From: Anthoceros angustus
Lineage: Eukaryota; Plantae; Anthocerotophyta
Assembly (NCBI GenBank): GCA_010909165.1
Contig: VJWM01000135.1
Location: forward strand, 248,001 to 312,000
Direction of reading: 5' to 3'
Length of the DNA: 64,000 nucleotides
Shown: positions 2,509 through 48,654 of the stretch, in pieces
Numbering within the stretch: the first letter of the stretch is position 1
How the letters are laid out: every line of letters starts with the position of its first letter
Notes under the pieces: generated by a model
The model's input: only the letters and a program-made list of their open reading frames with translations
What the model was told of the DNA's origin: nothing
Databases searched by the model: none
Translations under genes and position numbers: made by a program

Positions 2509-2546
2509 AGTGGATTGATCCTGAACAATACTCCAACATTGGAGTT

Positions 2547-2610
2547 AACACGATATCTTGTGAAGGGGGTGAATATCCGAACCCCCTTCCGTGAAATGAA
2601 AACCCCCTTA
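2547..2610 (+). repeat. Left TIR plus subterminal GAAGGGGG/ACCCCCTT motifs
   Basis: Exact reverse complement of 14790-14819 over 30 bp, followed by two ACCCCCTT copies. Confidence 0.92.
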
Positions 2611-3106
2611 GCACAACTCACACAGTCCCGAAATACGCGTTTTGGCTCTTTTTAAAAAAAGGTCGACCATGTTCCAACGAGTAGGTATTGAGAAAAACTG
2701 TTATCGCACAACAAAGACATGAAAATGGTGCGAGGGCGCCGGCCGGCCGGCGCCTTTTCATTGATTCTTTGGAACAAGGGAAACTGAAGACATCAATTGC
2801 CTCAATGCAACGGGTCCATAAGTGATTGCGAACTAAGCGAAGCAGCAGATGCACATGACATGAGACCACTAAGCCTACTCCCTAAGGCTAACTTGGGACT
2901 CGTCCGGGGGTAGAGCAAACTCGAATCCATCACAATAGCCAGATTTCGAATGCGCTCCACTTCCTCTTCATCGAAGCTATCGTTCTCCCCCAAGGCCCTA
3001 GTGTCTTTGTTTAGTCTTGTCGTGGGTCGTGGAAGGCTGCCAAACGCTATCCAAGGATTGCTGTCCCTCATCAAAAGTGCTCCAGCTTTGGTCTTGACCT
3101 ATGCGT

Positions 3107-4010
3107 TTAAGGAAACAACTCGAGCTTGTGGAGTCCTTCTCGATACACACCTCCTTTGCCCAGTGCAAGTCCTCTGCGGTGGGCGTCAAATGTCAGTTCT
3201 TCTTCAGCATCAGGCAGAACCTCATGCCCAGAAATCCTTTGTGCAATATATCCTGCACACCTCAAGTCAGCTTCTATAGCAATACAATTCCGTCCGCATA
3301 GTAGAGCCGCCAGTAACGTTGTCCCACTCCCAGAGCATACATCCAAAACCCAATCCCCCTCTCTCGAGAAGGTTCGGATAAGTTTCATCATAAGGCCCAG
3401 AGGCCTCTGGTATGGGCAAACCACCAGCTTGTCTTGGGACATGTACACCTGTTTCTTCACAACCGTATCGTGAGCGATCACAGACCTCCCATTGTTGAAA
3501 GTGCCGTGCATGGCATTGGGCATCATTGGAACTCTATCCCCTGTGAACCCATCTTTCATTCCCCAACCCACTGTGACATATTCCACGGTTTCGAACCCAC
3601 CCCTGTCATTGTTCATGTTGGTCTTGTCCCATACAAATGAGACCAAGCCCCCTTTCTTGCTCCACCGCATGGACTCCCACGGTGTGAGCCTCCTCCACAC
3701 CATGCATGACAATCATTCTCAACTCATCGGAAGTTGTTTTCTTCGCAAAGCTCTGCAAAACAGTGTCCATCATCTGCTTGTCAACTCGTTCGTCCAAGGG
3801 CCCAATTTGAAACCCCCTTGCAACGTCCATCACCAGAAGTGTGTACTTCCGTCCTCTCAGAAATCCTCGCATGTCTACCACATCTCGGCTTTCCACTTGG
3901 TATTGCACTTGTTTATCCGAGGAGGGCACACTGAACACCTCCAATCCTTCCTCAAGGTCCTTGTCCGCTAAAGCACGCTGCTCGTCCTCCAGCCCTTTCC
4001 AATTGTTCAC
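3107..4010 (-). CDS. Beta-class (N4-C/N6-A) DNA amino-methyltransferase domain, frameshifted in this assembly
   Basis: YTLLVMDVARGF occupies the motif IV position, followed by FVWDK and then CPYQRPLGLMMKLIRTFSREGDWVLDVCSGSGTTLLAALLCGRNCIAIEAD (QKP-like motif and SAM-binding motif I). The order IV-TRD-I defines the beta class. Confidence 0.85.
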
Positions 4011-4350
4011 CTCAAAAATAAAATGTTGGAAGGCATCGGAAGTTTGGACAAGACCTCAATGTCCTTCGATTCTTTGCGAACCACAAGTTTGTTAGTCCAA
4101 AGTGGGAAAGAACGAATGGGCGCCGGCGGCGCGCCCTGACCTTGTCTGAGCATGGACAAGAAACTCACCTTTCCAGAAAAGCGCTTTGAAACCGCGGCCC
4201 GTATATGGAATGCAACGGATATTCCTCTCGGACCTCCTCAAATGAAGAGCACCCGGTGCTTGACCATCGCCACTTGTATGACATGAAACTTCTTCCGCGT
4301 GATCTCCTCATCCATGCCCTTCAAATCAATCAGCACCTTTTACATCGCGG

Positions 4351-5130
4351 TCACGAATTTCTTGGCACTCTCCAGTGGTATGCCTTGGAGATTTCCATGG
4401 CTTTGCCAACATGTCCTTGACTTCCATTACAGTGTCCATTTACGCTCCTCAACAGCTTCCCTTTCCCTTTCTTGCTTGTTCCTGCGGTAAATGCTTCTTC
4501 TGCTCGGAGTTCTCCACCTCCCACTTGAGAAAATGGAGTCCACATTGGCCCACACCTTTCCTTCCTGCTTGGCAATGCATAAAATGTGTGTGCGGTTATC
4601 CACTTTGTTCTGCTTATACACATCGTCTTTGCGCCCTTCATCATCCTCAATCAGCCCTAGCACCTTGTACAGATTGTACTTCCATGCCATTGTCATCTGT
4701 ACTCCTTCTCGTTTTGCTATCAATAGCTCATCTCTTAAGTATCGGACCTGCTCAATGAAGTTCATCTTCTTCCGTTTTGTCCGACATAGTGTTGTGATCG
4801 TGGCAAGGACTCGCATTTACGGTATAGTAAGCCCGCAATAGACATGCGCTTCAACATATTGGAACCTCTTCTTCCACGGTGATATATCGCATAGATGTTT
4901 CATGGTCGCATAAGTGTGGTTCCCACCAAGAACCCCCATAACATATTTTTTCGCCCGCCATCTCTTCGGTCCAACTTCTTGAGGTCATTGCACTCACTTG
5001 GATCAATCATACATAATAGTGGCAATACACCCTCCTCTATCCTCCCTTGAAATAACTCGCCAAATAATTGGCCCATGCCTCATCAACCTAGATCTGCGCG
5101 TGTTATGCGGTCGGTCGTAAGTTCTCCAAT
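4351..5130 (-). pseudogene. ParB/Srx-like N-terminal region of the ParB-MTase gene, copy 1 (frameshifted)
   Basis: Near-identical to 6240-7020. Includes YVMGVLGGNHTY and MNFIEQVRYLRDELL. Confidence 0.6.
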
Positions 5131-5373
5131 TTCACTATACTCTCCATGACAACCTTCTTCCGTAAGCTGAATCCCTTAGGCGAGTGAGGGGTGCATCCAT
5201 CATCGCGTCGCGTTCTTCATCTGTCAAAATATGCACGATGGGAATGCCACCAAACACTTCCTCTTGTCTGCCCTTTTGATTTCTTTTTCTTCCTCCCCTC
5301 TCCGTGCTTCCACTCGGGTTTCTTCGCACCTGGAATCCAACACCGCAGCAGGCGCTTGCCTTGAGCGATCACG

Positions 5374-6100
5374 ACCTCCCATTGTTGAAAGTGCCGTGCA
5401 TGGCATTGGGCATCATTGGAACTCTATCCTGTGAACCCATCTTTCATTCCCCAACCCATCGTGACATATTCCACGGTTTCAACCCACCTCATTGTTCATG
5501 TTGGTCTTGTCCCATACAAATGAGACCAAGCCCCTTTCTTGCACCACCTTCGCATGGACTCCGGTGTGAGCCTCCTCCACACCATGCATGACAATCATTC
5601 TCAACTCATCGGAAGTTGTTTTCTCCGCAAAGCTCGCAAAAGGTCCATCATCCGCTTGTCAACACGCTTTGTCCAAGGGCCCAATTTGAAACCCCTTGGA
5701 ACGCTCCATCACCATAAGTGTACGGCGTTCTCGAAATCCACGCATGTCTAAATCTCGGCTTTCCACTTGGTATTGCACTTGTTTATCCGAGGAGGGCACA
5801 CCGAACACCTCCGCCCTCCTCAAGGTCCTTGTCCGCTAAAGCACGCCGTCCTCCACTTTCCAATTGTTCACCTCAAAATAAAATCTGAAAGGCATCCGGA
5901 AGTTTGGACAAGACCTCAATGTCCTTGCTTCGCGAACCACAAGTTTGTTAGTCCAAAGTGGGAAAGAAGAATGGAGGGCGCCGGCGGCGCCCATGACCTT
6001 GCGAGCATGGACAAGAAACTCACCTTTCCAGAAAAGCGCTTTGAAACCATGACGATCTCGTGGAATGCAATGGATATTCCTCTCGGACCTCCTCAAATGA
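5374..6100 (-). pseudogene. Second, 3'-truncated copy of the MTase domain (motif IV region only)
   Basis: Direct duplicate of 3484-4200. It stops at 5374, before motif I. Confidence 0.75.
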
Positions 6101-6239
6101 AGAGCACCCTGTGTGCTTGACCATCGCCACTTGTATGACATGAAACTTCTTCCAAGCGTGATCTCCTCATCCATGCCCTTCAAATCAATCGTGCCGGTTA
6201 ACACCTTTTCCGCATGACGAATTTCTGACCGTGACTCTC

Positions 6240-7536
6240 CAGGTATGCCTTGAACGATTTCCATGGCTTTGCCAACATGTCCTTCATACCATTTGCCCGC
6301 TCCTCGCCCAACTTGCGCTTCCCTTTCCCTTTCTTGCTTGTTCCTCCGGTAGATGCTTCTTCTGCTCGGAGTTCTCCAGCCTCCCACTTGAGAAAATGGA
6401 GTCCACATTGGCCCATACCTTTCCTTCCTTGGCAATGCATAAAATGTGTGCGGTTATCCACTTTGTTCGCTTATACATCGTCTTCGCGCCCTTCATCATC
6501 CTCAATCAGCCCAAGCACCTTGTACAGATTGTACTTCCATGCCATTGTCATCTGTACTCCTTCTCGTTTTGCTATCAATAGCTCATCTCTTAAGTATCGG
6601 ACCTGCTCAATGAAGTTCATCTTCTTCCGTTTGTCCGACATAGTATTGTGATCAGTGGCAAGGACTCGCATTTCTGGTATAGTAAGCCCGCAATAGACAT
6701 GCGCTTCAACATATTGGAACCTCTTCTTCCCTGGTGATATATCGCATAGATGTTTCATGGCTGCATAAGTGTGGTTCCCACCAAGAACCCCCATAACATA
6801 TTTTTTCGCCCGCCATCTCTTCCTGTCCAACTTGCTGAGGTCATTGCACTCACTTGGATCAATCATACATAATAGTGGCAATACACCCTCCTCTATCCTC
6901 CCCTTCGAAATAACTCGCCAAATAATTGGCCCATGCCTCATCAACCTAGATCTGCGCGTGTTATGCGGTCGGTCGTAAGTTCTCCAATTTCACTAGCACT
7001 GTCTCCATGACAACCTTCTTTCCGTAAGCTGAATCCCTTAGGCGAGTGAGGGGGTCTGCATCCATCATCGCGTCTGCAAGGCGTTCTTCATCTGTCAAAA
7101 TATGCACAGTGGGAATGCCACCAAACACTTCCTCTTGTGCCGGCGCCCTTTTTGATTTCTTTTTCTTCCTCCCTGTCTCCGTGCTTCCACTTTCGGGTTT
7201 CTTCGCACCCTCGCTGGAATCCAACACCGCAGCAGGGCGCTTGCCCCTTGAGCCAGTCGGCGGCTGGTCGTCTCTATCTCCTATGGCGAGGAGGGCGCCG
7301 GCCGGCCGGCGCCCTCCGCCTTCTTCCTCCCGTCCATACCCTGTGTCCACCCCCGCACCCACTTCCTCCTCTGTGCCTCCAACGTCAGCACCTCTTCCAC
7401 TGCGGTCCAGTGGAAGGGCTCTTGTGGATGGAGGTATGCCAGGGGCGCCGGCCGGCCGGCGCCCCAGTCCGCTATCTCCTTCCTGGAACTGGATAAACCA
7501 GTTGGGATCCGGAGTGGCCAAGTCCAGAGCCCGCAC
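6240..7536 (-). CDS. ParB/Srx-like domain plus K/G-rich N-terminus of the ParB-MTase gene, copy 2
   Basis: KLENLRPT...ISKGRIEEGVLPLLCMIDPSE...KYVMGVLGGNHTYAAMKHL...EMRVLATDHN resembles the ParB/Srx GxHR-type motif region. The frame continues toward the MTase with no obvious intron. Confidence 0.6.
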
Positions 7537-10326
7537 TCTTCGCCGGCGCCGGCCGGCCGGCGCCCACAGCTACTCGGCATTCACTACATGTGCACACTCA
7601 TAGATGGCCCATGCCAAGCCAAGCTGGGTAAAATTGCCGCATCCCTATCTTCGTCCTGTCCCCGGAGACTTCATCATCGGAATGTCCCAAAGACGTCAGA
7701 ATCGGGCCCTCTTCCTCATCGGATGGGCCAAGTTCGCTCTCAAGGCTGTTGCTCTGCCTCTTCAACCATTCTTTGATGTGCTGCTCACCCTTCTCATCGA
7801 TGCCTCTCTCCTATGATCAATGACTCTCGTATCTTCCACAGATTGCCCTTATAAGGGCCATTCCTACCAAAGGTGGCTGGAAAACAAACAAACAAGTTGA
7901 ATGTTAGTCATCAAAGTCGAGGGTTTTGAAGTCACATGTCGTTGTTGAAACTTACCGTAGTCGGCGCATGCATTCGGAACTCTTCCACTATTGCTCGGTG
8001 CACATTTTTGGCGTTGAATCCTTGAGGTGAGAACATAAGACACCTGTAAACTCGGGGTCTGGATGACGGCATCGAACTCGTATGGCTCGGTGGTGCACAA
8101 TAGCGTGAACTCCGGCTCCCCTCGTTCATGTCCATGGTTGCCCAGATTACCCAGCCAGCCCTTGCTCTCGATTTGGCAAAGCCCCCCGATACCCCATTAT
8201 CCGTAGTTTGAGCAAGGGGTCCATGCTTTGTTCAACCTCCGGTGCGGATCCCGGACTAGCATCCAATCATACACTGACAATAGGGTCTATCGCCACCCGA
8301 TCTGCGGATGTGCAGTCTCTTCATAGCGAATGGCGAATTGGTGCAGCACGGATGCTTTGAAGCCTTGCCTCCTCCTTCCCACTCCTTGCCCTGCCTTGTT
8401 CGCTTGTTTTCCCAAGACATGCTCCGGATTTTGCCGCCTAGGCTATATGGCCCCCACCCTCCAATGTGCGGCGTGCCCTCCCAAACTTCCTTCCATCCTC
8501 TGATCGGAACCTCGTCTGCGATTTAGCGGATGTCTTGTCTTATGCTTGCCTTCGTCGCCTGCTGCGGAGGATCGAATCGCCTCGCCAGTCCTTCTTGCTC
8601 CGCCTTCCGCCGCCATCTTTAAGAATGAACCCGCAGAGCCGACATCACGAATTTGGAAGGCAAACAATTGTTTCACATGGAAGTAGAACGAACCTCACCT
8701 CACTGAGCCGATTGATGCACGAGGAATGCCGGCTCCTGCCTCCCCAACCACAGGCCCACCGTGATAGCTGCAATCCCAAAGCGCTGAGGATTCGTGGAAT
8801 TGTGGACGGACACCTCCTCCAAATCGGGCAACACCACTGCGGTCGACGCTCCTCGTTACTTCCTCAAGTGGAAGTGCTGGCCAGAACGCTCCACTGTGAC
8901 GGCAAGTGGCAAGAGAAAACAAATAGTAATTAGGGTTTCCTCGCCAACTGGTATTTATAGCCCAAAAACATGCCTGAATTAACTTATGCCAGCATATTTC
9001 CATATACCCAGATATAAACCACGGCTGAACCGTAATCCTATTGACTTTGGTGATGGCTGGCCGGGGCACACTCATTGTGGACAATAAAAGCGGAGGACGG
9101 CGCGATATGCCGTTAGATATCTGTATCAGGAACTCCATCATGTTCTTGTTACTCCAGAGGAAAATAATATCCTACCCATCTATGCGCTACACCTATCAAT
9201 AAAGACAATGGCCATCTTCACCATTGTCCTCGTCACTGGAGGTCTCTTCCAAGACACCGCGTGGTTTCAAACGGCAGTGTGGTTTCAATCGACGCTTCTT
9301 ACAAGTTGTGCGCATACCATGTTGCGCCTCACCCACACCCGGCTAGCGAAGAGGTTTGAGTTCGCCCTTTTGGAAGGATTACTTGGTTTTCACCCCTATC
9401 TTGTTTTCGGATTCTGAGTTCAGTTAGTGCATCCGGTTGCGGGATGAACAATGGGAAGAAGGTTTCTCTTCACAATGTCGCGTGTTTCCGTAAAGATGGA
9501 GAAGCGAGTAGACCTGTGCCACCACGTCCCGAACTCGGCATCACCGTCGAGTCGTTTGCCATTCCGAAAGACGTGTTGATAATGAAGGTAGAGGATGATT
9601 TTTCCATATGGGAATGTGGACGCTAGTGTCAGTATGGTTGTGGGATTTTGATGCATTCTTCCGATATTGTTGTTCGGTCTGTAGAAGACGTCGCCGATTC
9701 CGTCATCTCCATGGTGTTCCTCCAACACCTAGGAATTTGCATCGATCTGCGTTGGAGGAAGCCCATCCAAGCGTTCAAGCTTCCCGAATGGCGGCGTTCT
9801 CCCAGATACATCGACGGTTGCACGCCGTGGTTTGTTTCTGAGACTGATTGTCCGCTCACCGGTTGAGGAAGGTCCCATTGGCGACAATGAAGATTCGAGC
9901 GTGTTTCACCACGATGCCATGTTCCTTCCATCCCAAGCCTTTGAGTGAGTCTGAAGGCTCCAACAAGGCGATTGTTATATCACGCAAGAAGAGAAGCTGG
10001 AGTGTCGTTGCAGCGAAGGGGATACAATGTTGCATTTCAAGAAGCCTTGTTGCATAAAAATGTGTTTCTGCGGTTGGGGAAAGCGCGATTTCAACAACGT
10101 ACGCTTTCTTCGCATGGGAGGCAGAACAGAGACATATCTGCTCTTGTTGATCCACTGGATCCCGAGGTGATAGGGCGAAAGTGGTGACACATGTCATGGG
10201 GCGACTCTGTCGCTTGAAGGCTTTTAGAAGAGTACATTGTCTTGGCCAGGAGGTATGAGGAGCTAAAGAGCGAGTCATTCGGAATCACCTTGGGATGGAT
10301 TTGAACCAAACCCAAGGCACGGCGAC

Positions 10327-13300
10327 GTGCGATGGATGCCCTTTCGTGGATGGACAACGCCACGTTTATATGGCGGTGCCAAACTTGGATGTTTTAATCC
10401 GCCCGACACGTATACAAAGTTGGAAATATGGACCTTGTACAAGCGTCGGTCGAAAACTCTAACACTCGCTCGTCAAGTACCCATGGTTCTTGAAATTGTG
10501 GAGAAGCAACTTCCCAGAAAATCCGAAGTCCAACAGTTTTCAACATGCTCGCTTTGTCCATCAAGAGCACTATCAGAACACAATGCACAAGGAAGATCAA
10601 GGTAATTTGCACCAATGTGTCCTCCATGAGGTTGTTCACCGCTATGGATTTGCTTGACTACCCGATGGAGCGGATGTGCTCTTCAATACCACTTGTCATA
10701 TGAGATGCATGTTCTATGTCTTTGTGTTTGGTTTCCAAACAATGCGGCAATTCAAGGTGCCGGCTGCCGCCCGTGAGTGGTTTCCACGACCACGAGGAAG
10801 CCCAAGCGAGAGGCCTGGTTGGAAGGCGCACGGCCAGCAGGTGGAGGGGCGCGGTCGGCGCCTCGGCGCCGCCAAATCGGAAAGCAGGGATTGTGGGGGG
10901 CCGGTGGCGCCCACCACCCCCCTCTCCCCTCTCCCCCCACTTTATCTCGCCATATCCCCATTTGGGATGAGCGTCGTCTGCAAATAAGCATTCTTTGCAT
11001 GTGAGGAAGTTTCCTTGTTAAGGTCGGCGATGTCTGTTCATTTGGAGGGACCAACGGATGCCGTTATTGAGGATTTTCTTATATTTCTGACTAGGACATT
11101 TGTTTGTGGCACAGAGAAATTTCAGGCTGCTTTGGAAGCACACCGCGTGCGCCTCCACCAGGAGCGGGAGAAAATGTCTAAACACAGGAGCAAGAGCTAT
11201 GTGGAGCCACATAAGTATATGCTACTATCCATAGATGGAATGGACCAGAAAAAGACAGAGATTCCTCATCTTCTCCGGTGGCGAAAAACCTCGTAGAGGA
11301 GTGTCGATTTCACCACGTGGTTGGGTGTATGATTCACAACTACGCTGGCGAGAGCCTATTTGCATTATGCGAATTTACGAACGACGCAACCGACGATCAC
11401 CATCATTCGGGGCGTTATACATAATTACGAGGGGTCCGCCAAGAGTTTTGTATGCGCTGGACAACACATGCGGAGAACAAGAACCGGTGCTTTTGCATAT
11501 CGAACATGCTTGTTGATATGGGTACTTTTGAAAAAGTGAAAGTGGGATTCCTTTTGGTCGGGCATACGCATGATCAAATCGACGGATGTTTTCTTGCTTC
11601 TCCAAAAGCTTGAGACATAAAGAGGCTCACACCGCCCGCATTGTCGAGATCTTGATGCATGCGTACACTCCGTCACGGTAAAGATATTGGTGAGTGGGAC
11701 TTTCGGTCATATGTGTGGCCTATTAGACAAGGCCGAGAGGCCTCACTTATGGGGAAGAGATTGAACAACTTATCGTTCCGGCCTGTTTAAAATAACCCGT
11801 GAAGAGAAAGCGGACCGCGGGTTTGTGTGATTATCGAGGCAAGATTTGAAGGCGCCGGCCGGCCGCCTTCCCAACCGAAATGTAACTGTGAGTGTGGATG
11901 GGCGCCGGCCGCCCGCCCGCCCAATCGAGGAGATTGGAGGGGCGGCCGGCGCCCACCACCCCCCCCCTCTCCCCCCACTAGCCATGTATCCCCATTTGGG
12001 ATGAGCGTCGGCAAATAAGCATTCTGCATGTGAGAAGTTTCCTTGTTAAGGCGATGTCTGCTCATTTGGAGGGCCTAACGGATGCCGTTTTGAGGATTTT
12101 TATATTTCGACTAGGACATTTGTTTGTGGCAGAGAAATTTCAGTCGCAGAAGCACACCGCGCGCCTCCACCAGAGCGGAGAAAATGTCCAAACAGAGCAA
12201 GAGCTATGTGGAGCCACATAAGTATATGCTACTATCCATAGATGGAATGGACCAAAAGACAGAGATTCCTCATCTTCTCCGGTAAAAACCTCAGAGGAGT
12301 GTCGATTTCACCACGTGGTTGGGTGTATGATTCACAACTACACGCACAAAGCGAGAGCCTATTTGCATTATGCGAATTTTAACGACGCAACCGACGATCA
12401 CCATCATTCGTGACGTTATACATAATTACGAGGGGTCCGCCAAGAGTTTTGTATCTGAATCGGACAACACATGCGGGAGAACAAGAACACCGCTTTTGCA
12501 TATCCGAACATGCTTGTTGATATGGGTACTTTTGAAAAAGTGAAAGTGGGATTCCTTTTGGTCGGGCATACGCATGATCAAATCGACGATGTTTTCTTGC
12601 TTCTCCAAAAGCTTGAGACATAAAGAGGCTCACACCGCCCGCATTGTCGAGATCTTGATGCATGCGTACACTCGTCACCGTGAGGTAAAGATATTGACCT
12701 GGCGGTACTCCATATGTGTGGCCTATTAGACAAGGCCGAGAGGCCTCACTTATGGAGCTCAGAAGAGATTGAACAACTTATCGCTCCAAAGACCGCTTTA
12801 AAATAACCCGTGAAGAGAAAGCGGACCGCGGTTCGTGATTGCTATCGAGCAAGATTCCACCTCGCCACAATGGGAAGCGGAAGGGGTTTGGAGTTTCGAA
12901 ATTTGTCCTTCCGACACTATATGTTTGCGCCCCTCAACACTGCGGTCAAGGGATAAAAAGGAACACAGTGACATTATCACCAATCGCAGCTGCTGCCCAT
13001 CTTAAGGATGGTCTTTGAACTTAGGCCTTATGTGACATCACAGAGTTTTTATGGTGGGAAGCTTTACGGTTGGACCAAGAGGAGATTCTTGTTATTGTGC
13101 AAAACAACATTGGCCTTGTGCTCTAATCCTTGGAAATGGTACTCAAGATCGGAAGTGGATGCACCAACCTCTCCATGTTCCGGATGTGGCGGTCTTTGGA
13201 GGAGGCATTGCTAAGGGACCTCCACAACGAGATATGTATTTGGGAGCATACCAAACACGGGAGGCAACAACAGAAATGGAACGGTGGAATGGTGATATCG

Positions 13301-14070
13301 CGGAAATAAAGCGAGGGATGTTTGTTGCGTTCCGCGACACGACACGCATAATGCACCCTTTTGGATTGGCAAGGTGCTCATTCAATTGCATTCGCCATGC
13401 CTCACTTCCTTGTTCATTGGTACAGGCGAACAGATCGTCTGAAGGAAGGTACGTAGAAGAATATTTGTCGGAGGGATGCCGCAGCTGCGAGCAATGCAGG
13501 AAAAGGGAGCGAAATCCATCCATCAAAAAATATCCAAAAGGTTTTTGTTCACGAAGCTCATCCTCTATTATGGGTTCACATTGACTACGCGGAGACACTT
13601 ATCGTAGATAAGAAGGCAATCAAAGAGAAGTTCATTGGTACAGGCGAACACACAGATGCGTCTGAAGGAAGGTCGTGAAGAATATTTGTCGGAGGGATGC
13701 CACTGAGCTGCGAGCAATGCAGGAAAAGGGAGGCTATCCATCCATCAAAAAATATCCAAAAGGTTTTTGTTCACGCGTCATCCTCTATTATGGGTTCACA
13801 TTGACTACGGAGACACTTGTACGCTGTAGATAAGAAGGCAATCAAAGAGAAGTTCATTGCGTTGCGAGGCTTCATTCAACCAGTGAGTGAAAGTCCCACC
13901 GAGGATAGTGAAGATGATGGTCATGATGCCGACCAAGATGATGGAGTGGCGTCACGGAGAAGAGTAGAAAGCCCTCGAATGTTGTGTCATCTTGTGGGAT
14001 CTTGGGAGGCTATCGTGTCTCAACAGTTTGCTCACAGACATATGTCTCAAAAGAGTGTAGGCCCATGATA
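10327..14070 (+). pseudogene. Sola-like/DUF7869-type transposase, spliced, frameshifted and partly duplicated
   Basis: TKLEIWTLY...FSTCSLC at about 10420-10560; KYMLLSIDGMDQKKTEIPH at about 11215; DNTCG-ENKN at about 11460; GFLLVGHTHDQID at about 11550-11585; C-terminal RWNGDIAEIKRGMFVAF...VHWY at about 13280-13430. A candidate intron acceptor tttgtggcacag lies near 11115. Confidence 0.75.
10900..12900. repeat. Tandem duplication of about 1.03 kb covering the transposase catalytic core
   Basis: The anchor cccatttgggatgagcgtcg occurs at about 10957 and about 11991. Confidence 0.88.
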
Positions 14071-14744
14071 GAATATTGGTTGTGCCGTTTCTCTATATAC
14101 CTCTGTAGACTTCACATGCTATAGAACTTTCGATGTGCAAGCCATTTCCCTTTACAAGCGGCAGGACATGGAGGAAGTATGGTCGTAGTTAAGGGCTTGG
14201 CATTCCGGCATATTGGCAGGCAACACATGTGTAGCCCGCCGGGCATGTTTGTGTGTGCGATATGACGGCGGGAACCAGTCGGCGCCCACGTTTTCCCGTT
14301 TGCCGATTGTAGTCTTTGGGTCTTAACAAGGTGATTATATTCTTGGGCTCAATTTATGGTGTCACGAAGCCACCCACTCACCCCACATATAGTCTTTGTG
14401 TACACACGAGCAAAAGGCCTGCTACTACCCGCCTTTCCCAATAGGTCACAGCGCGAAGCAGGCGCCGGCCGGCCCCTCAAACATCCTTGGTCCTCGCCAT
14501 GGGTTCGCATCTCATCCACGATCACCGTCCTTTTATGAATGTTAAGGGTTTTTGGCGAGGAAGACCCGGTGATGGCGAGAATGGTCCTTCACATGGGTCT
14601 TATATGCACCCAAAATAGGGTTACCTCTTGCACCTTAACCCCTTTGCAAGAAATGAACCTCATGTCAATGCTTCACAAGAAGTTCACCCTTCTTTTACGC
14701 CTATATTCATTCATACCTCTATAACCACGAGTTGCGGACCCATG

Positions 14745-14819
14745 TCAAACCCCCTTCAGGGGATATTTCCCGTGAAACCCCCTTCGTGAATATTCACCCC
14801 CTTCACAAGATATCGTGTT
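14745..14819 (-). repeat. Right TIR plus subterminal ACCCCCTT motifs
   Basis: Sequence aaacccccttc...gaaacccccttcgtgaatattcacccccttcacaagatatcgtgtt, followed by the AGTT TSD. Confidence 0.92.
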
Positions 14820-15059
14820 AGTTATCCATGTAGCAACTGTGTGAATGCGTGGAGAATGAACCTGGAGGCTACCCGCTCACTCGATTTCAAGCACTTGCTG
14901 ATTATAGGGCGTAGGAACAGGAGATGATAGAGACAATGGTGATTGGTGTGGAGGGCATTATTGCCCTCATCAGCCCGTATGGATGGCCCGAGGTGAAGCC
15001 CAATGGATGTACAAATGAGCGAGGCTATTGAGCCCAATTGCAAGGTGAGCAAAAGGCCA

Positions 15060-15650
15060 ATCAAGGGTCCCTCTCTTTAGTATTTAGCGCTATTTGTGTG
15101 CATCTTAGTAGGCTGATGTGTCCTCCCTTTTGCCATACTTCTCAGCATTTGTTGTTGTTTCATCATTCTGAGGTCCGGTTGTGTTTTTAAAGTATGTCCT
15201 ATCGTGCTTCCTTCAAATGCGTCTGTGTTCTGGGTTACCCACCAGTGAACTTTCATGAATGGTGACTCACATTCAAAATATTTTTGGAGCACTTTCGCAA
15301 TCCAGAAGCGGCGGTTGGCATTGTCATTTTTGCAAGGAGCTGCTATCATATTCCCGACAGCGATCTCTGAAATATCCCCATTCAACCTCTCTCGCTTGCT
15401 TCGGCAGAATCCATTGTTCCGATAGGCTCTACTCTTCAGTGCTTCCTCAATTCTGCTCTTCAAAGAATTATGCGTGAAAGAGAAATCACGCTACGTCCAA
15501 ATGAGAATCGCCCTACTGTGCATCATCCTGAAGCAAGGCCTCCAAGTCCAAGCCCTATGGAGCTTGCAGACAACGGAGAGCCTTTGCAACCAGAAGCAAG
15601 GCAGCAGCCTACTCAGGTTGACAAAAATTTACATGTTCTGCCATCTTCAT
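15060..15650 (-). pseudogene. C-terminal fragment of a related Sola-like transposase (copy 1)
   Basis: RERLNGDISEIAVGNMIA...RRFWIAKV...MKVHWW aligns by eye with RWNGDIAEIKRGMFVAF...VHWY at 13.3 kb. Confidence 0.6.
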
Positions 15651-15779
15651 GATGTACTGACCAAGTGTGATGAGCTGGTGAAGGCGCTGGAGGCGGCGAG
15701 CGCACGAACATACGAGCTGGAAGCACTACTAGCTCGCCGCCTTGATCCTAAAGATCCTAATCACTCCCTGAATGAGGGA

Positions 15780-18700
15780 GAATGCTTGGCTATGTAGAGT
15801 CGCGTCTTCGCCTTTCATCATGTTGTGACGCAAAACACAACTTGACTACTTCTTCTCCCGGGTTTCACCCCGGCCTTCATTGCGAGGAAAAAAAGAGGGC
15901 CTCTTGTCGAGGCCAAACAAAAAGAAAAGTGCTAAAATTCTACCTATGCCTGGACATGCACCAAGCTCACATGTCTGCTCAGGTTGGAGAGAAAATTGGG
16001 GCTGCCTACGGGCTGCCTAGAGGCTGATAAGTCCAGCGAACACTTACACATTACACACATTGCCACAATACGAAAGGGAACAGCGCATACACACACAACA
16101 GTCTTTGCATTCTGACCTCTAGAGTTAGAGCAACAACAAATTGCGTGTGTTCATTGCGTTCCTCCTAAGACTTCGACACAAGCTGCCTTCCTGACCGCCG
16201 CCTTGTGTCTTGTGTTCGCATAATCCGCCTTGCAACCACCTTGCGTCGGCTAGTATACCGACGCACACTCTTAGTGCTTGATCCATCACTGTTTGGATTG
16301 GGTGATCATATGCGCTTTCTCCCACGCTGAAATGCGGTGAGTAAGGAGGAGGAACTTGGCCCTAAGCTTGGCCATTTTTTGCAGGTTATTTCCGACTTTT
16401 CTGTTTAAGGGCATTTTAGTAATTATATCGGTACCAGCAGTTAAACTAATAACAAAACCTACTTGCTAAGCCCTAGCTTCAAGAGTTAGTTCTAGCATCG
16501 ATTTCAAGCACTTGCTGATTATAGGGCGTAGGAACAGGAGATGATAGAGACAATGGTGATTGGTGTGGAGGGCATTATTGCCCTCATCCAACTGTTATGG
16601 ATGGCCCCGAGTGGCTTAATGGATGTACAAATGAGCGAGGCTATTGAGCCCAATTGCAAGGTGAGCAAAAGGCCAATCAAGGGTCCCTCTCTTTAGTATT
16701 TAGCGCTATTTGTGTGCATCTTAGTAGGCTGATGTGTCCTCCCTTTTGCCATACTTCTCAGCATTTGTTGTTGTTTCATCATTCGAGGTCCTGTTTTTAA
16801 AGTATGTCCTATCGTGCTTCCTTCAAATGCGTCTGTTCGGGTTACCCACCTGAACTTTCATGAATGGTGACTCACATTCAAAATATTTTTGGAGCACTTT
16901 CGCAATCCGAGCGGTTGGCATTGTCATTTTGCAAGGAGTCGCCATCATATTCCGACGATCTCAAATATCCCCATTCAACCTCTCTCGCTTGCTTCGGCAG
17001 AATCCATTGTTCCGATAGGCTCTACTCTTCAGTGCTTCCTCAATTCTGCTCTTCAAAGAATTATGCGTGAAAGAGAAATCACGCTCTGTCCAGCGAGAAT
17101 CGCCCTACTGTGCATCATCCTGAAGCAAGGCCTCCAAGTCCAAGCCCTATGGAGCTTGCAGACAACGGAGAGCCTTTGCAACCAGAAGCAAGGCAGCAGC
17201 CTACTCAGGTTGACAAAAATTTACATGTTCTGCCATCTTCATGATGTACTGACCAAGTGTGATGAGTGGTGAAAGTAGGCTGAGCGCCTGAACATACTGT
17301 TTGGAAGCACTACTAGCCTTGATCCTAAAGATCCTAATCACTCCCAGATGAGGGAGAATGCTTGGCTATGTCGTGCGTCTTCATCGTTTGTGTTGACGCA
17401 AAACCAATGCTTATCACTTCTTCCTGGTTTCACCCCGGCCTTGATTGCAGGAAAAGAGGGCCTGTGTCCGAACAACAAAAAGAAAAGTGCTAAAATTCTA
17501 CCTATGCTACCAGACATGCACTCACATGTCTTACTCACTAGTTCGAGAAAATTAAGGGCTGCAGGCGCTTAGAGGCTGATAAGTCCTTGAACACGCATTA
17601 CACACATTGCCACAATGCTGGCAGCGCATACACACACAACAGTCTTTGCATTCTGACCTAGAAGTTCGACAACAACAAATTGCGTGTGTTCATTGCGTTC
17701 CTCCTAGACGACAAGCGCCTTCCTGACCGCCGCCGGTCTTGTGCCTTGCAACCACCTTGCGTCGTGATACCGATGGGCACACTCTTAGTGCGGCATCCTG
17801 GGATTGGGTGATCATATCGCTTTCTCCCACGCTGTGAGAGGAGACTGGCAAGCTTGGCCATTTTTCAGGTTATTTCCGACTTTTCTGTTTAAGGCATTTT
17901 AGTAATTATATCGGTACCAGCAGTTAAACTAATAACAAAACCTACTTGCTAAGCCCTAGCTTCAAGAGTTAGTTCTAGCATCGCCACGTCCCGTCGTGCG
18001 TCTTTGTATTTATACGCTTCCACAGGGGAGTTAGGAAATAAGTAGGGTTTCTGTTTTTTAGGATTGAAGGATAAATAAAGGCTAAAGGAGGAATAAATTG
18101 GGGTAGCGCTTGACGAGGTGAGGCTCAGGTAGCACTCCGGACTCGAGTGAACAACAATGACCCGTGCCACTATAACAAGTCTCGGACTACCCGGAGAATG
18201 CTTGGCTATGTCGCATGCCTCATTGCCCAAGAAAACCAAGAACATGCTTGCTCACACTTCTTCCTGGTTTCACCGGCCTTCACCGCATGAAGAGGGCCTG
18301 CTATCCAGGCCAAACAAAAAGAAAAGTGCTAAAATTCTACCTATGCCTGGCCCAGACATGCACCACATGCCTGTGATGCTCACTCCGTGTAGAGGCGGGG
18401 CCCCACATGCCGCTCCTAGAGGCTGATAAGTCCTCTGAACACGCACATTACACACATTGCCATTAATGCGAGCAGACACACACAAGGTCTTTGCATTCTG
18501 ACCAGAAGTTCGACAACAACAAATTGCGTGTGTTCATTGCGTTCCTCCTAGGGACTTTGACACCGCCTTCCATGCCCGCCGCCGGTCTTGTGCTCGCACT
18601 TGCAACCACCTTGCGTCGGCTAGTATACCGACGCACACTCTTAGTGCTTGATCCATCACTGTTTGGATTGGGTGATCATATGCGCTTTCTCCCACGCTGA

Positions 18701-19730: not shown

Positions 19731-20081
19731 TCGTGCGTCTTTGTATATCTTACGGGAGTTAGGAAATAAGTAGGGTTTCTGTTTTTTAGGATTGAAGGAT
19801 AAATAAGGCGGAAGGAGGAATAAATTGGGGTAGCGCTTGACGAGGCTCAGGTATACTCCGGACTCGAGTGAACAACGGACCTTGCACTATATGACTGACT
19901 ACGCCGAATGTGGATAAGTCCGAACCCACCCCTGTGTCAAAATAGGATAAGTACGCCGGTAACCTAGGAGTGGAGGCGTGAATACACCTTATAACGGCCT
20001 CTCGGCAAGGTTCTGGTCCCAGCCTCATCGCATGCCCGACCTCCACTCGGGGCCGTCCACGCATATACCGCCTCAGCAAAA

Positions 20082-23000
20082 TGTGGCGAGACTTTTCTTG
20101 ATGGCGGTGACGCGCACAATCCGTGTCGTTGTGGGAAGAAGTCCGTTCCCAAAGGAATGATAGGCCCGTTTAGCGTTTGGTGATTCTTACCGTCCTTAGC
20201 GCTCGTTCGGTCTCAACTCACACATACTCCTAACTACTAGCGTTCACCGTCTGAGGCCGGTATGGCCAAGCGTTTGAGACCCGTTCGCGTCCGTATCGTT
20301 CACATACATCCTCACGCATCGTCCTTTCCTCTCTCCTCTCACGCTACACTCTTGATCTTAGAAAAAGGCCAGATTCTGTGATCCGGACCTCCTCGTCGTT
20401 CGCGGGCCTCTCGTCCGGGCTCTACACCCTCCGGAGTTCCTCCGGCTCACGCGTTCGTCCGTTCGGTGTCGGACGCGGCTCGGGCGAGCACGGATCACGG
20501 TCACCCCTTCACACACCACAGCGCGTTAAGTCGTCACGGGACCTTGATCAATCTCCCGGGCATTGCGCTTTCGGTGACTCGGGACTCACGTTAGCAAGAA
20601 GACTCACAAAGTGCGCAGAGCGGCATCAACACCAAGAAAGATGCTTTACTAGGCGACCTCGGCCCTCTTATCTGCGCCCAAGGTGGCGTCTTTATTACAC
20701 CCCTATTACGTGATAGCCATTTCGGTATACCTAATCGGCCGCCTACCACCTATCCCCCTATCTCCTTGGCCGGTGGTGGGAAGGTCACAGGCCCCCTCGG
20801 AATGGGTGGTCAATCCCCGTCAGCGGTTGTGGTGCACCCAATCGGATGATCCGTGGCGGGCCCCTCCTCTCCCGGAATCACATCGGGTTGGGCTCTGGCG
20901 TGATCGACAACCGCCGTTACCACGGCGTCATCCTCCCTGGCCTCCACAGGTCCTTGGCCGGTGGGGCCACCAGCTCTCCCCTAAGCGTAAGTCGAAGGGG
21001 CTCCTCCTTCTTGCCGGCCGGTCCTCGAGGTCTGTCTCGACTCCGAACTTGAGTCCTTATTCGGTCCGGCTAGGTCAGGCCTTGTCTGGGTCCGGACCTC
21101 GGTCGGTTATTAGGTCGGACTTGAGTCCGGACTTATTCAGTCCGGACTTGATCCTCCCCTGGGTCCGGACAAAGTCGGACTCACGCCCACCGGGTTTCCT
21201 CCCTCACGGGACTCCTCCGTGGCTCTCCCTCGAAGTCCTCCTGTTCCCGATCGCCCGGTGACTCCCGTTGGCCCCTCCTTCCATGGTGAGGTGCGGGGTG
21301 CTTACCTCGATCGCATCCGCTCCTCGTTCTGCTCCTCCGGTTGCTCCTCTCCGCTCCGTCATCTCCAAGCAGGGCCACTAGGGTCCTGTCTTTGTCCCGT
21401 GGCCTTCATCTCCTTGAGCCTTCCGGTCCGTCCGTTTCGTGACGTCGAGGCTTCTCGCCGGGAGCTCGGCGTGGTAATAGGCAAAGTCAGATCGACTTGT
21501 TGAATTGCCTCTTCCACGTGTGCGGGCACCGATACTCCTCCGCCATAAGTGTTGGGGAGGCGTCTTTGCCGGCTTGTTGGGCCACCTCTCTGCCCAGTTG
21601 TGGTGGGGCCGTGTATCACGCGAGGCTACAAGGCGGCCTCGGTCACCTCCTGCATGCATGTTGCTCACTGCTCCGGCTCCGTCGTTTCCTCTCCATTGAC
21701 TTACCGCCATAGCGCGGCGTTCCCTTCCGCCTTTCGGTGGACCGGCGGCTTCTTTTACCTTCCGTGCTCGCGCTCCTCGTTCATTCGGCCTTTAGCTCGA
21801 CTCCCTCTCAGTGATCGGATACCTCTCCAGGCGGACTTCCTCCGGCTCATACATGGCAGCAGCGTCCAACTCCTTGGATAGTCGCGATTTTCCTCCGTCT
21901 TGAGGCCGGGAGGACTCCGCCTTTCCTTTGCCCCTCGAGGTCGTGGATTCTCTCGTTGAGAATCACTGCTGCTCCGGCGCATCTTGGGTTGTAGCTCAGC
22001 GTGTCCTTCATCCTCCATCTGCTGCCGCCTCCTTCTACCTCCTGCGGTGTACTCGGAGATCCCCTATCTCCCGTCTTGGCCTCCACTCCATAGCCTTTGT
22101 CACGGCCTTGAGTTAGCCTCGGTACTGTGACTCTCTCCACGGTTCGATCACGTGCATGGTGATCCGGTCGCTCTTTGTGACTTGACTCCTTCGCCGCCTT
22201 TACAGGCCTCGCCCACTTGGCCTCTGGGGCCGCCTCCGCGGTCCCAGCTCTCTCTGCTTGTGCCGGGCCTCTTCCGCCTCTGCTGCGCTTCCCTCTTCGC
22301 TGCAAGGTCCTCCGCCCGCTTGGCCTCTGAGCTTGCTTGTGACGGTGAAGAACCTTAACCAGTCTGTGAACCGCGGGCCTCGCGCTCCGCCACCGGCGTT
22401 TCCCTTCCTCGATCCGGCGAGGACTCCGCCTTTCCTTTGCCCCTCGGCCTTCACTTGCTCTTGGGTTCCACCATCCTCCTCGGGTGGCCTCCACTTCACA
22501 GGTCTTCTCCATTGTACCACGAGACCCCAAAGCATTCCGTCCATGGCGGTAGCAGGACTCGCCGTGTTTCTTCCACGGCCGCGTGAGAGGCCCCCACAAA
22601 GTCCGTAGTGGGGCCGGCATTTCTCGATCCGAGGACCTCCATACCCTTGATCCGGAGTAAGTCGGGGGGTTCTCGGACCTAATCGGGACCCTCGGGTCAC
22701 AGTGGTGGTCAGTCTCACCCTCTTGGCCCTCTTGGCCTCTAACTCCTTTGTGCCCTCTTTCTCACAGGGCTCGGAGGAGGTGAGGGGTCGGGAGCAAGCT
22801 CTTTTGCCCCTTCACAGCCGGGGCAGGCCCGGCTCGGGGTGGGGTGCGCGGTGACCTCCTGCTCCTTGGGCCACGTCCCTTTGCCCCTCCTTACGCCTCT
22901 TGACCTCTTGCCACTCAGGTGGCGGGGTAAGAATCTCGGCACCTCGAGGTCTTTGCGTTGGTAAGCGGCACCGTCTTCCGCCTCTTGACTCCCGGGTTCG

Positions 23001-25741
23001 TCGGGGCTCGGCCGTCGTGGTTGTTGGCTGTTGTTGCAGCCGGTGCGGCCGCCAGCGCCCTCCGGCATCGCTCCCTCCGTGCGGTGCTCGGAGGGCACCA
23101 AAAGGAGGAAGGGGAATCGCCTCCCAAACTTCCACAGGTGGTGAGGGGTTCGCTCAGGGCGTATGGAGTCAGGAATCCTCGATCGTCCTCCTCCAGTCGC
23201 TTGGTCTTGAAGGGCGACCCCCACCTCAGGCGCCCTTGCACGCTCTGCCAGGGGCCTCCGGCCCCGCCGGGCGCCCGCTCAAGCTCTCCTCCTTGAGGGC
23301 TCGAAATGTCCCCATACATGAATCGGTATGGGGTCGATGGCGAGGCTTCTCGCTCCTTAGCTTGCGTGCCTCTGGCCGGGCGAAGATAATCCTTCCCGGT
23401 CGCTCTCTTCCCATTGGGCGCATGCGAGAATAGCGAGTTATCACCAAGGTGATCCACCTTGGTGGCGAGTTCAATGGACAATGATCCGGGCTACCGCCCT
23501 TACTCGGTATCGGCGGATCGGATATCAACCATCCGTTGGTTGTCGCTGCGTTCGAGCCTCGGCGCGCCTGGCCCTATCTTCCCTTCGCCTTAAGGGGCTC
23601 GGCACGCCCCTTCTTCCTCCTTGCGGTTGTAGGCCATCCTCGGGACCTCAAGGTCCATCGCCTCGAGTCCTCCGGAGGTTCTTGGATCGGACCTCCTTGT
23701 TGATCGCCCGGCATCTTCGGGCAAACTCCGGACTAGAGTAGCGTTGTCAAAGGTCCGACCATTTGGAACACGTCCGGATGCCACTCCTGCACCAATTCCA
23801 CTTCCTCCGGCCCGGGGCCCGAAGTCCGGATAGCGGGTCACAATGTTGCGCTCCACGGTCCATGGCTCCCAGACTTCCGTCGGCTTTTGGGTGCCATTGC
23901 TTTCTCCTCCTCTTGTTCTTTGTGGCTGCGGAGTCCGTGGCACGATGTTCCTCCTTCGCGCGTTGTTGCTCCAACCTTGACGGTGCGCCGCTCTGGTGGC
24001 GCCCAAAAATGGCCGAGCCGGATTGCGGGCGCAAGGATGAGGATTGCGGAGGCTGCGCGGTGACCTCCTGCTCCTTGGGCCACGTCCCTTTGCCCCTCCT
24101 TACGCCTCTTGACCTCTTGCCACTCAGGTGGGCGGGGTAAGAATCTCGGCACCTTCGAGGTCTTTGCGTTGGTAAGCGGCACCGTCTTCGCCTCTTGACT
24201 CCGTTGAGTTCGTCGGGGCTCGGCGGCCGTCGTGGTTGTTGGCTGTTACTGCGGTGCGGGGCCATGCGCCGCCCTCATCGGCTCCCTCTGCTGCTCGGAG
24301 GGCACCAAAAGGAGGAAGGGGAATCGCCTCCCAAACTTCCACAGGTGGTGAGGGGTTCGCTCAGGGCGTATGGAGTCATCCTCCCGGTCGTCCTCCTCCG
24401 AGTCGCTTGGTCTTGAAGGGCGACCCCCACCTCAGGCGCCCTTGCACGCTCTACTTGCCAGCGGGGCCTCCATTCCGGGCGCCCGTTCAAGCTCTCCTCC
24501 TTGAGCTCGAAATGTCCCCATACATGAATCGTATGGGGTCGGCGATAAGGGGCTTCGCTCCTTAGCTTGCGTGCCTCGGAACAGGCGAAGATAATCCTTC
24601 CCAGTCGCTCTCTTCCCCATGGGCGCATGCGAGAATACCAGCGAGTTATCACCAAGGTGATCCACCTTGGTGGCGAGTTCAATGGACAATGATCCGGGCT
24701 ACCGCCTTACTCGGCTCCGGCGGATCGGATATCAACCATCCGTTGGTTGTCCTGCGTTCGAGCCTCTCAACGCCGCCCGTGGCGGCCCTATCTTCCGCCT
24801 TAGGGGCTCGCACCACGCCCCTTCTTCCTCCTTGGGCGGTTGTAGGCCATCCTCGGGACCTCAAGGTCCATCGCCTCGGGTCCTCCGGAGGTTCTTGGAT
24901 CGGACCTCCTTGTTGATCGCCCGGCATCTTCGGGCAAACTCCGGACTAGAGTAGCGTTGTCAAAGGTCCGACCATTTGGAACACGTCCGGATGCCACTCC
25001 TGCACCAATTCCACTTCCTCCGGCCCGGGGCCCGAAGTCCGGATAGCGGGTCACAATGTTGCGCTCCACGGTCCATGGCTCCCAGACTTCCGTCGGCTTT
25101 TGGGTGCCATTGCTTTCTCCTCCTCTTGTTCTTGGCTGCGGAGTCCGTGGCACGATGTTCCTCCTTCGCGCGTTGTTGCTCCAACCTTGACGGTGCGCCG
25201 CTCTGGTGGCGCCCAAAAATGGCCGAGCCGGATTGCGGGCGCAAGGATGAGGATTGCGGAGGCTGCGCGGACCTCCCTCCTTGGCGCTTGTGGAAATGCT
25301 GGCGGAAGGCGCCTCTTCGTTGTCCATGCGCGAGTGCATGGCTTACTCGACCCTCGCTTCGCTTACTGCGGCCGCCGCGCGCGGCCGCGGGCGTGAATAC
25401 ACCTTATAACGGCCTCGGCAGGTTCAGTCTGACCTCTGCATGCCCGACCTCCACTCGGGGCCGTCCGTGGCGCCGCCTCGTCATCCTCACGCCTCCTCCT
25501 AGGTTACTTTCCACAGGCGTACTTATCCTATTTTGACACAGGTGGGTTCGGACTTATCCGTTACTCCGTGGTCGGAGCTTGCCATAGTAGTGCAGGGGTC
25601 CGTTGTTCACTCAGTCGGAGTATACTCGGAGCCTCGTCCGGCGCTACCCCAATTTATTCCTCCTTTTCCGCCTTATTTATCCTTCAATCCTAAAAAGCGA
25701 AACCCTACTTATTTCTTAACTCCCGAAGTGCATAGCCCACA
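20082..25741 (-). repeat. 3' LTR, about 5.66 kb, with an internal tandem duplication of about 1.21 kb
   Basis: The duplication anchor gcgcggtgacctcctgctccttggg occurs at about 22846 and about 24056. Confidence 0.85.
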
Positions 25742-25789
25742 TACTCCCTTCTCATCATTGGCGTCTCGCCAACACTAAGCATGATACTT

Positions 25790-31318: not shown

Positions 31319-31382
31319 TCACTTACCTTCTCTTCCTAAGGGGCACTGCGGCACCACGATTTCATTCCCGGCAGCGCCAAAA

Positions 31383-48320: not shown

Positions 48321-48577
48321 ATGACAATCTCCCTCTTATACTACGTCATGAGGGAGCGCTTGTCCACAAGGTCCCCATGGTTTGGTCTACCCCACAAGAC
48401 ATCTTCAGCAAGCTGGTTTCGACCGTGTTCGTGACCACCAAGACTCAACAACAATGCCATCTTCCTTCTCTTCCATCTTCCTTCCTTGACACCCTCACTC
48501 ATAGCTGCACCAGCCGCACCACATCCACACCGCACTGCACCGCACCGCACTGCGTGCACTCAGCTTGCACCGGACCG

Positions 48578-48654
48578 CCCGCACCCGCACCCGCACCCGC
48601 ACCCGCACCCGCACCCGCACCCGCATCCATACCCGCACCCGCACCTACACCTAC
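48578..48654. repeat. (CCCGCA)n hexanucleotide microsatellite
   Basis: About 12 imperfect units, with degenerate CCGCAC units just upstream. Confidence 0.9.

Follow-up and report, generated by a model that had tools for sequence, protein, structure and literature searches.

A dead copy of a probable Sola1-superfamily DNA transposon with a ParB-like/N6_N4 methyltransferase gene in Anthoceros angustus

The Anthoceros angustus sequence examined here is a 64-kb window (64,000 nucleotides of assembly GCA_010909165.1, contig VJWM01000135.1, positions 248,001 to 312,000 of the forward strand), in which a 12,273-bp element with terminal inverted repeats (TIRs) occupies positions 2547-14819. The element contains a transposase gene on the plus strand and, divergently oriented on the minus strand, a gene for a fused ParB-like/N6_N4 DNA methyltransferase protein (Table 1). 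A repeat search returned a 31-nt perfect inverted repeat at 2546-2576 and 14790-14820, which occurs once in the window; no match arose in 100 shuffles of the sequence. The outermost T/A pair of this repeat belongs to the target site duplication (TSD), the TIR proper being 30 nt long and identical at both ends (left end, AACACGATATCTTGTGAAGGGGGTGAATAT, opening with AACACGATATC; as a search string, AACACGATATCTTGTGAAGG), and the TSD is 4 bp long, AGTT on either side. Exact TIRs and a TSD had been claimed in the original prediction, which was made from the sequence alone, and both were recovered, with the ends of the element at the positions given there. Among other TSDs considered by eye, TA, TTA/TAA and TTAA are accounted for by the palindromic T/A adjoining the TIR, and an 8-bp TSD fits the ends poorly. 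The interior of the element does not recur at the DNA level elsewhere in the window (blastn self-comparison).

Table 1. Features of the element in the window, and loci elsewhere that carry the same gene pair (L002, L003 and L069). HMM, hidden Markov model; ORF, open reading frame.
Feature	Position	Strand	Evidence and remarks
Left TSD, AGTT	2543..2546		read directly; same as 14820-14823
Left TIR, 30 nt	2547..2576	+	perfect inverted repeat; AACA... tip and GTGAA box common to the TIRs of L002 and Chara L003
Palindrome GGCGCCGGCCGGCCGGCGCC, subterminal copy	2735..2754		perfect
Methyltransferase, C-terminal half	3110..3712	-	PYQRP 3401-3415, motif I GSGTT 3317-3331; PF01555; PDB matches TTHA0409, CcrM, RsrI, DpnA, MboIIA
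Tandem duplication 1	3471-5366 / 5362-7253		92% identity at aligned bases, 41 indel events; copy 2 motif IV MERSKGF 5689-5709
Methyltransferase, N-terminal half, other frame	3609..4055	-	degenerate motif IV MDVARGF 3810-3830; tblastn with P0007; Riccia has DVPYGF there
ParB-like domain, copy 1	4430..5131	-	several frames; GGNH 4916-4927; family HMM matches on 4 ORF pieces
ParB-like domain, copy 2	6474..6989	-	one open frame, 172 aa; GGNH 6771-6782, VYCGLT 6681-6698, DHN 6645-6653; tblastn with Ginkgo, Chara and L002 proteins
Three exact palindrome copies	7294..7564		at the 5' end of the ParB-methyltransferase gene or upstream of it
Possible remnant of transposase N-terminal zinc-finger region	9955..10602	+	2 collinear non-significant HMM matches, E 0.7-0.8; weak tblastn, E 0.4
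Tandem duplication 2	10886-11846 / 11928-12856		89% identity at aligned bases
Tandem duplication 2, copy A, and catalytic core	10886..11846	+	IDGMDQ 11231-11248, LDNT 11457-11468, GHTHDQID 11560-11583, three frames; DUF7869 E 2e-11
Tandem duplication 2, copy B, and catalytic core	11928..12856	+	IDGMDQ 12238-12255, GHTHDQID 12564-12587; DUF7869 E 3e-13
Transposase C-terminal region	13036..13859	+	FWIGKV 13359-13376; includes tandem duplication 3; tblastn with P0181 residues 338-806 extends to 13515
Tandem duplication 3	13412-13637 / 13630-13859		92% identity at aligned bases (Tandem Repeats Finder, blastn)
Right TIR	14790..14819	-	perfect inverted repeat
Right TSD, AGTT	14820..14823		read directly
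L002, JGI metagenome contig, 8,915 bp, whole element	TIRs 20-47 / 8844-8871		TIRs start AACACC; DUF7869 transposase on one strand, divergent 789-aa ParB-like/methyltransferase protein on the other
Chara braunii L003, scaffold BFEA01000586	transposase 8204-5663; methyltransferase gene 14200-16267	-; +	transposase unannotated; TIRs 5143-5170 / 17060-17087 starting AACATG, TSD GCTA/GCTA
Riccia sorocarpa (liverwort) L069, CM100794.1	ParB-like/methyltransferase frame 9152-11698	+	transposase adjoining, same divergent pair

Two pieces of the plus-strand gene match Pfam PF25273 (DUF7869), and a full-length relative, the 580-aa transposase encoded on the metagenome contig L002, matches the same family at E 3e-50. 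This relative has 392 homologues; they are multicopy in Chara braunii and are also found in the green alga Cymbomonas and in oysters, mussels, corals, amphioxus and echinoderms, the taxonomic spread expected of a transposase. The L002 transposase core was modelled with AlphaFold on a 34-sequence alignment; the model has a predicted local distance difference test score (pLDDT) of 92.7, and its structural matches are IstA, the catalytic cores of retroviral integrases, Sleeping Beauty, TnsB and other RNase H-fold nucleases. Its conserved acidic residues D44, D127 and D169 lie in IDGMDQ (end of strand 1), LDN (end of strand 4) and GHTHEDID (start of the helix that follows), respectively. All three catalytic motifs were also found in the window, but are frameshifted there. 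As modelled on the L002 homologue, the transposase is of the RNase H-fold DDD type, in agreement with the plus-strand DDD transposase of the original prediction.

The transposase of Sola1-1_Ec32, an element of the brown alga Ectocarpus, has the motifs MDGxxQ, VDNxxxENKN and VGHTHxxIDQ (MMDGANQ, VQVDNTVAENKN and MVGHTHIQIDQIFS; PMC12477816). Since the same three motifs, a 4-bp TSD and AAC... termini are shared with Sola1-1_Ec32, we conclude, at the level of motif comparison, that DUF7869 probably corresponds to the Sola1-type catalytic core; no papers on DUF7869 were present in the literature searched. The TIR tips read AACACG... in the window, AACACC... in L002, AACATG... in Chara and AACCG... 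in Ectocarpus. A second C-terminal fragment of a DUF7869/Sola1 transposase was observed at 15209-15403 on the minus strand (ORF 15077-15463, with FWIAKV at 15290-15307), about 400 bp beyond the right TIR and in the opposite orientation. Given this fragment, the element may have landed beside or within an older relative.

In the product of the minus-strand gene, a ParB-like domain precedes a beta-class N6_N4 DNA methyltransferase. Its C-terminal piece (3110-3712) matches PF01555 (N6_N4_Mtase), the family expected by the original prediction, at E 1.5e-13 (51.6 bits against a cut-off of 26.7) and aligns with solved beta-class enzymes across PYQRP and motif I (VLDVCSGSGTT). Along the minus strand motif IV comes first, PYQRP second and motif I last, which is the beta-class order. 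The window lacks the catalytic motif IV, (D/N/S)PP(Y/F/W): DVAR stands in its place in copy 1 of a tandem duplication described below, and ERSK in copy 2. In the relatives motif IV is DFPY, DIPY or DVPY, a hydrophobic residue replacing the first Pro. The form D-(F/I/V/L)-P-Y is found in most Chara copies, L002, the ENA contig protein P0008 and Riccia, and the aromatic residue is lost in Ginkgo (DIPH, DISQ), two SRR33208241 contigs (DLPR), some Chara genes (DFPC) and the window (DVAR). The Asp of motif IV, YQKP and the GSG of motif I are invariant throughout the family.

A profile of the family matches the N6-adenine enzymes DpnA (3.8e-13), MboIIA, CcrM and RsrI far ahead of the bdelloid N4CMT (1.3e-7). 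These comparisons bear on the original prediction, which saw in the element a possible vehicle for N4-methylcytosine (4mC) or N6-methyladenine (6mA) enzymes into plants, and on a rival reading in which the protein would be an N4-cytosine methyltransferase akin to Marchantia DN4MT1 or bdelloid N4CMT and such transposons the route of 4mC enzymes into plants. All these proteins belong to the same Pfam family, PF01555, the structures of N4CMT are matched weakly by the family profile (about E 1e-7), and the family is present in a liverwort. However, DN4MT1 has TSPPY, whereas in the present family Asp rather than Ser is invariant in motif IV, and the best solved relatives are the N6-adenine enzymes. 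Since the SPPY motif of DN4MT1/N4CMT is absent and the family is closest to N6-adenine enzymes, these sequences do not support linking the gene to the 4mC enzymes known from eukaryotes, and we regard such a link as very improbable. The methyltransferase, if active, is more likely of the adenine (N6) type.

The distribution of motif IV is also relevant to whether the accessory protein is still an enzyme. In many lineages it could have lost its catalytic pocket and have become a regulator of the element that binds DNA or S-adenosylmethionine; this would agree with the replacement of the motif IV aromatic in Ginkgo, the SRR33208241 contigs, some Chara genes and the window, with the invariance of motif I (GSG) and YQKP, and with the inactive methyltransferase domain proposed for DIRS1 retrotransposons (PMC4738411). 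We nevertheless consider this unlikely, for D-hydrophobic-P-Y is kept in most Chara copies, L002, P0008 and Riccia, the ancestral protein therefore looks competent as far as its motifs indicate, and the gene in the window has in any case decayed to a pseudogene.

When the methyltransferase piece was searched against 1.84 billion representative proteins, no close relative was found, the best matches being a Ginkgo biloba protein (45% identity), several proteins of Chara braunii, a protein of a JGI metagenome contig and one of Riccia sorocarpa. Scanning metagenomes with the methyltransferase alignment gave only distant generic prokaryotic methylases (22-40% identity), which were set aside. Phage genomes match the methyltransferase domain alone, at 24-30% identity and through generic phage methylases; the ParB-like part has no match in phage genomes. 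Among 30 long methyltransferase matches from outside the family, one has Pfam ParB_N. Descent of the ParB-methyltransferase fusion from a phage as one unit is thus not shown by these sequence matches.

Since the proteins of the relatives also match the window upstream of the methyltransferase, at 6474-6989 and in the duplicate, the N-terminal domain with its GGNH box is a shared domain of the family, common to the homologues from Ginkgo, Chara and the metagenome (E 7e-9 to 8e-14 by tblastn). An AlphaFold model of this domain was obtained for the metagenome homologue P0011 from 13 family sequences, the window piece included (pLDDT 84). When it was compared with the PDB by Foldseek, each of the top 28 matches was to ParB, Noc, KorB, sulfiredoxin or PadC, with a best E of 7e-4 and probabilities of 0.99-1.0. 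The ParB/Srx reading of the N-terminal domain is therefore supported at the fold level, for the modelled homologue. The sole Pfam hint on this domain is a weak match of one Ginkgo copy to DUF6551 (E 0.006). In the box II region the family has GGGHSREA, and the window and Riccia have GGNH(T/S) lacking a nearby Arg (ParB motif GxxR). Scans with the ParB-like alignment found no relative in metagenomes and none among viral contigs.

The original prediction had placed a low-complexity N-terminus ahead of these two domains. The order of ParB-like domain and beta-class methyltransferase was borne out, but the supposed N-terminus (6990-7569) has no homology to the relatives and may be non-coding. This region contains three copies of a 20-nt, all-GC perfect palindrome, GGCGCCGGCCGGCCGGCGCC, which are considered further below.

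The same divergent pair of genes was found at loci in three other sources. In the stonewort Chara braunii (L003) and on the metagenome contig L002 the methyltransferase gene lies beside the same transposase within TIR-bounded copies, as it does in the window. In the liverwort Riccia sorocarpa (L069) the ParB-like/methyltransferase frame is apparently intact, with an IGGNHSALA box, DVPYGF as motif IV and DLCSGSGTT as motif I; near 10440-10640 the frame is briefly interrupted, perhaps by an intron, and the adjoining transposase is truncated after about 80 core residues. The methyltransferase gene is multicopy, with at least 13 genes in Chara and at least 5 in Ginkgo. One Chara braunii protein, P0023 (GBG86584.1, 1825 aa), contains the ParB-like/methyltransferase module twice, with ParB-like domains at 79-288 and 1054-1263; either the annotation has joined two elements lying in tandem or the duplication is real, and the protein recalls the tandem duplication in the window.

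Because the same pair recurs in L002, in Chara L003, in Riccia L069 and in the Ectocarpus element of the literature, the methyltransferase gene is, judged by this recurrence, a conserved accessory gene of a Sola1 lineage and not a chance capture. "Cargo", the term of the original prediction, is too weak for a gene of this kind, already published for Ectocarpus (PMC12477816). A one-off capture would mean that a host methyltransferase, or one acquired horizontally, had come to lie between the TIRs of the window copy only, as Pack-type cargo. Plant DNA transposons do pick up fragments of host genes, and two Chara methyltransferase loci have no transposase nearby, but the recurrence of the pair contradicts such an event, which we consider extremely unlikely.

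It is very likely that window 2547-14819 is a single insertion of a cut-and-paste DNA transposon of the Sola1 superfamily, with a transposase gene and a divergent ParB-like/N6_N4 methyltransferase gene. Several observations weigh against this interpretation: i) the Sola1 assignment is drawn from motif identity with the published text of the Sola1-1_Ec32 transposase, from the TSD length and from the TIR tips, ii) the Pfam ParB models (ParB_N and HTH_ParB) match neither the window pieces nor the whole relatives, even at E 10, and PDB sequence and profile searches with the ParB-like domain also gave no match, so that the ParB/Srx-like region of the original prediction is recovered by the fold search and not by Pfam, iii) the fold match of P0011 has a modest E value (7e-4) and low TM-scores (about 0.3), as expected because a two-lobed protein is being superposed, iv) both structure models, of P0011 and of the L002 transposase, are of homologues and not of the decayed sequence in the window, v) L002 has no clean 4-bp TSD, vi) a TIR search at the Riccia locus L069 was negative, and the TIR of the window is absent there, vii) no transposase lies within 10 kb of two of the three methyltransferase loci in Chara, and partial or non-autonomous copies therefore also exist, and viii) the 20-mer palindrome also occurs outside the element, at 46748 with one mismatch and at 47396 with three.

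The window copy contains three internal tandem duplications. The 1.89-kb duplication of the original prediction is real (tandem duplication 1, with a period of 1891 bp, 90.1% identity by blastn, 140 substitutions and 41 indel events), but its removal does not leave an intact gene of the kind foreseen. Duplications 2 and 3 both lie inside the transposase. In core copy A the three catalytic motifs are in three different frames, and copy B is frameshifted too; the relatives have no intron in the transposase core, which is a single tblastn segment in Chara. Frameshifts are present outside the duplicated parts as well. Both genes of the window copy are pseudogenes, even with the duplications removed, and the copy is dead. 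The original prediction spoke of a eukaryotic cut-and-paste element mobilizing a bacterial-type methyltransferase; an element with TIRs, a TSD and such a gene is indeed present, but nothing is mobilized by it in working form.

The 60 TIR bases show no difference and the TSD is intact, while the internal duplicates differ by 8-11%. Because of this divergence between identical TIRs, the duplications probably predate the last transposition, and by the time of that move the copy had probably lost its own function and relied on transposase from another copy. Alternatively, the three duplications could be artefacts of assembling a repetitive element. Three tandem duplications of similar identity (88-92%) in one element, numerous small indels and about as many transitions as transversions would fit an artefact, but the copies differ by 8-11% in substitutions, far above consensus error, the duplication junctions are clean, and frameshifts occur also where nothing is duplicated. 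We consider an artefact improbable and retain the view that the duplications are real and probably older than the last transposition.

The 20-nt palindrome occurs as exact copies with unrelated flanks at 2735, 7294, 7444 and 7545, and as degenerate copies at 11851, 11901, 11934 and 14462, some of them at the junction of tandem duplication 2. Its length of 20 nt would shift the frame if it lay within coding sequence. Arrays of long palindromes were also found directly upstream of the ParB-methyltransferase gene, in intergenic sequence, in Chara L003 (10673-10745 and 12359-13039) and in L002 (5676-5941). The core of the Chara palindromes is a 24-mer, GGAATCGATTACGTAATCGATTCC, present in six copies. 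The arrays of L002 and L003 occupy the same relative position as the three copies in the window.

These arrangements suggest how an intact element might work. In intact relatives the transposase would cut and paste the element. The second gene of the intact lineage, transcribed away from the transposase, encodes a ParB/Srx-fold domain with a helical extension, a linker and a beta-class N6_N4 (most likely N6-adenine-type) methyltransferase. The ParB-like module is predicted to bind the palindromic repeats beside its own gene and to bring the methyltransferase there; the element would thereby mark its own DNA, and such a mark could counter host silencing or time transposition. Taken on its own, this self-marking mechanism is one that we infer tentatively, as possible but somewhat doubtful. 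The palindromes beside the gene in L002, Chara L003 and the window speak for it, as do the inverted-repeat arrays of red-algal Plavaka elements, whereas the occurrence of the 20-mer outside the element speaks against it. It is unlikely, though worth stating, that Sola1 and the ParB-methyltransferase form an old co-inherited module, passed from brown algae through charophytes to land plants, in which ParB-like loading on palindromes directs 6mA to the element, the 20-mers of the window being parS-like sites. If this were true, a transposon-encoded self-marking epigenetic system would be active in plants, with apparently intact copies in liverworts such as Riccia.

Outside the element, the following features were observed in the window: 1) A block at 20000-37000 with 57-63% G+C, a strongly negative AT skew, internally repeated ORF-like sequence and an integrase-like ORF (26246-26761) probably consists of nested long terminal repeat retrotransposons. 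2) A tRNA gene is present at 49351-49423 on the plus strand (Rfam, 66 bits), with a (CCCGCA)n microsatellite (48566-48661) just upstream. 3) A glutamate-receptor-like gene with long exons lies at 52177-55317 on the minus strand and has sequence of the ANF-receptor and ligand-gated channel type. 4) A single-exon, F-box/Kelch-repeat-like ORF of 370 aa lies at 56888-58000 on the plus strand. 5) Two adjacent long ORFs (414 and 209 aa) at 61945-63799 on the minus strand look like part of a reverse transcriptase of the long interspersed nuclear element type.

Few transposons encode a DNA-modifying enzyme of their own, and those that do bear on how elements escape, or make use of, silencing by the host. 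ParB-methyltransferase accessory genes have been reported before from brown, green and red algal elements. What appears to be unreported in the literature searched is that charophytes and land plants (Chara, Riccia, Ginkgo and the Anthoceros window) carry the module, with TIR tips conserved across them; the palindromes beside the gene may be new too. The interest lies mainly in this comparative picture, the window copy being a dead relic. Land-plant material, including the apparently intact Riccia gene, is now available for asking whether proteins of this kind bind the element that encodes them and methylate it, and the results argue against these elements having given rise to the 4mC enzymes known from plants.

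The module shares features with proteins and elements of several known systems. 1) ParB-N6_N4 methyltransferase fusions of phages and prophages (bioRxiv 10.1101/2025.10.10.680097; Iyer et al. 2016, PMC4738411) have the same pair of domains in the same order, but only the methyltransferase part matches phage genes. 2) Marchantia DN4MT1a/b and bdelloid N4CMT are, like the window gene, PF01555-type proteins of prokaryotic origin in eukaryotes; they have (T)SPPY, make 4mC and are host genes lacking a ParB-like domain or TIRs, whereas the present family has D-x-P-Y. 3) Retrotransposons of dinoflagellates and charophytes that carry a C5 cytosine methyltransferase (de Mendoza et al. 2018, PMC5890265) also encode their own DNA methyltransferase but are class I elements with a C5 DNA methyltransferase. 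4) Fungal KDZ and Plavaka transposons with TET/JBP genes (Iyer et al. 2014) are likewise cut-and-paste elements in which a DNA-modification enzyme is a conserved accessory gene; the enzyme is a 2-oxoglutarate (2OG) dioxygenase and the transposase superfamily a different one.

Two algal cases involve both a ParB-like domain and a methyltransferase. In Sola1-1_Ec32 of Ectocarpus (Dinatale et al. 2025, Genome Biol, PMC12477816) a ParB-like/methyltransferase gene lies opposite the transposase, and the element shares with that of the window the Sola1 assignment, a 4-bp TSD, AAC... termini (AACCG) and the transposase motifs. It is 21.5 kb long and autonomous, with imperfect TIRs of 282 bp, whereas the window copy, in a plant genome, is 12.3 kb long and dead, with TIRs of 30 nt; the likeness of the two accessory proteins is one of description and not of alignment. 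Red-algal Plavaka, Zisupton and Mutator elements with PAG2 and PAG3 (Petroll et al. 2025; bioRxiv 10.1101/2025.02.11.637652) are also DNA transposons with a PF01555 N6-adenine methylase gene and a gene for a ParB-like domain. There the domains are in separate proteins (methylase with SET; ParB-like with 2OG oxygenase) and in other superfamilies, whereas here a single fused protein is encoded in Sola1. In the red-algal Plavaka elements, arrays of inverted repeats adjoin the ParB-like gene, and their authors propose that these elements bind and modify themselves.

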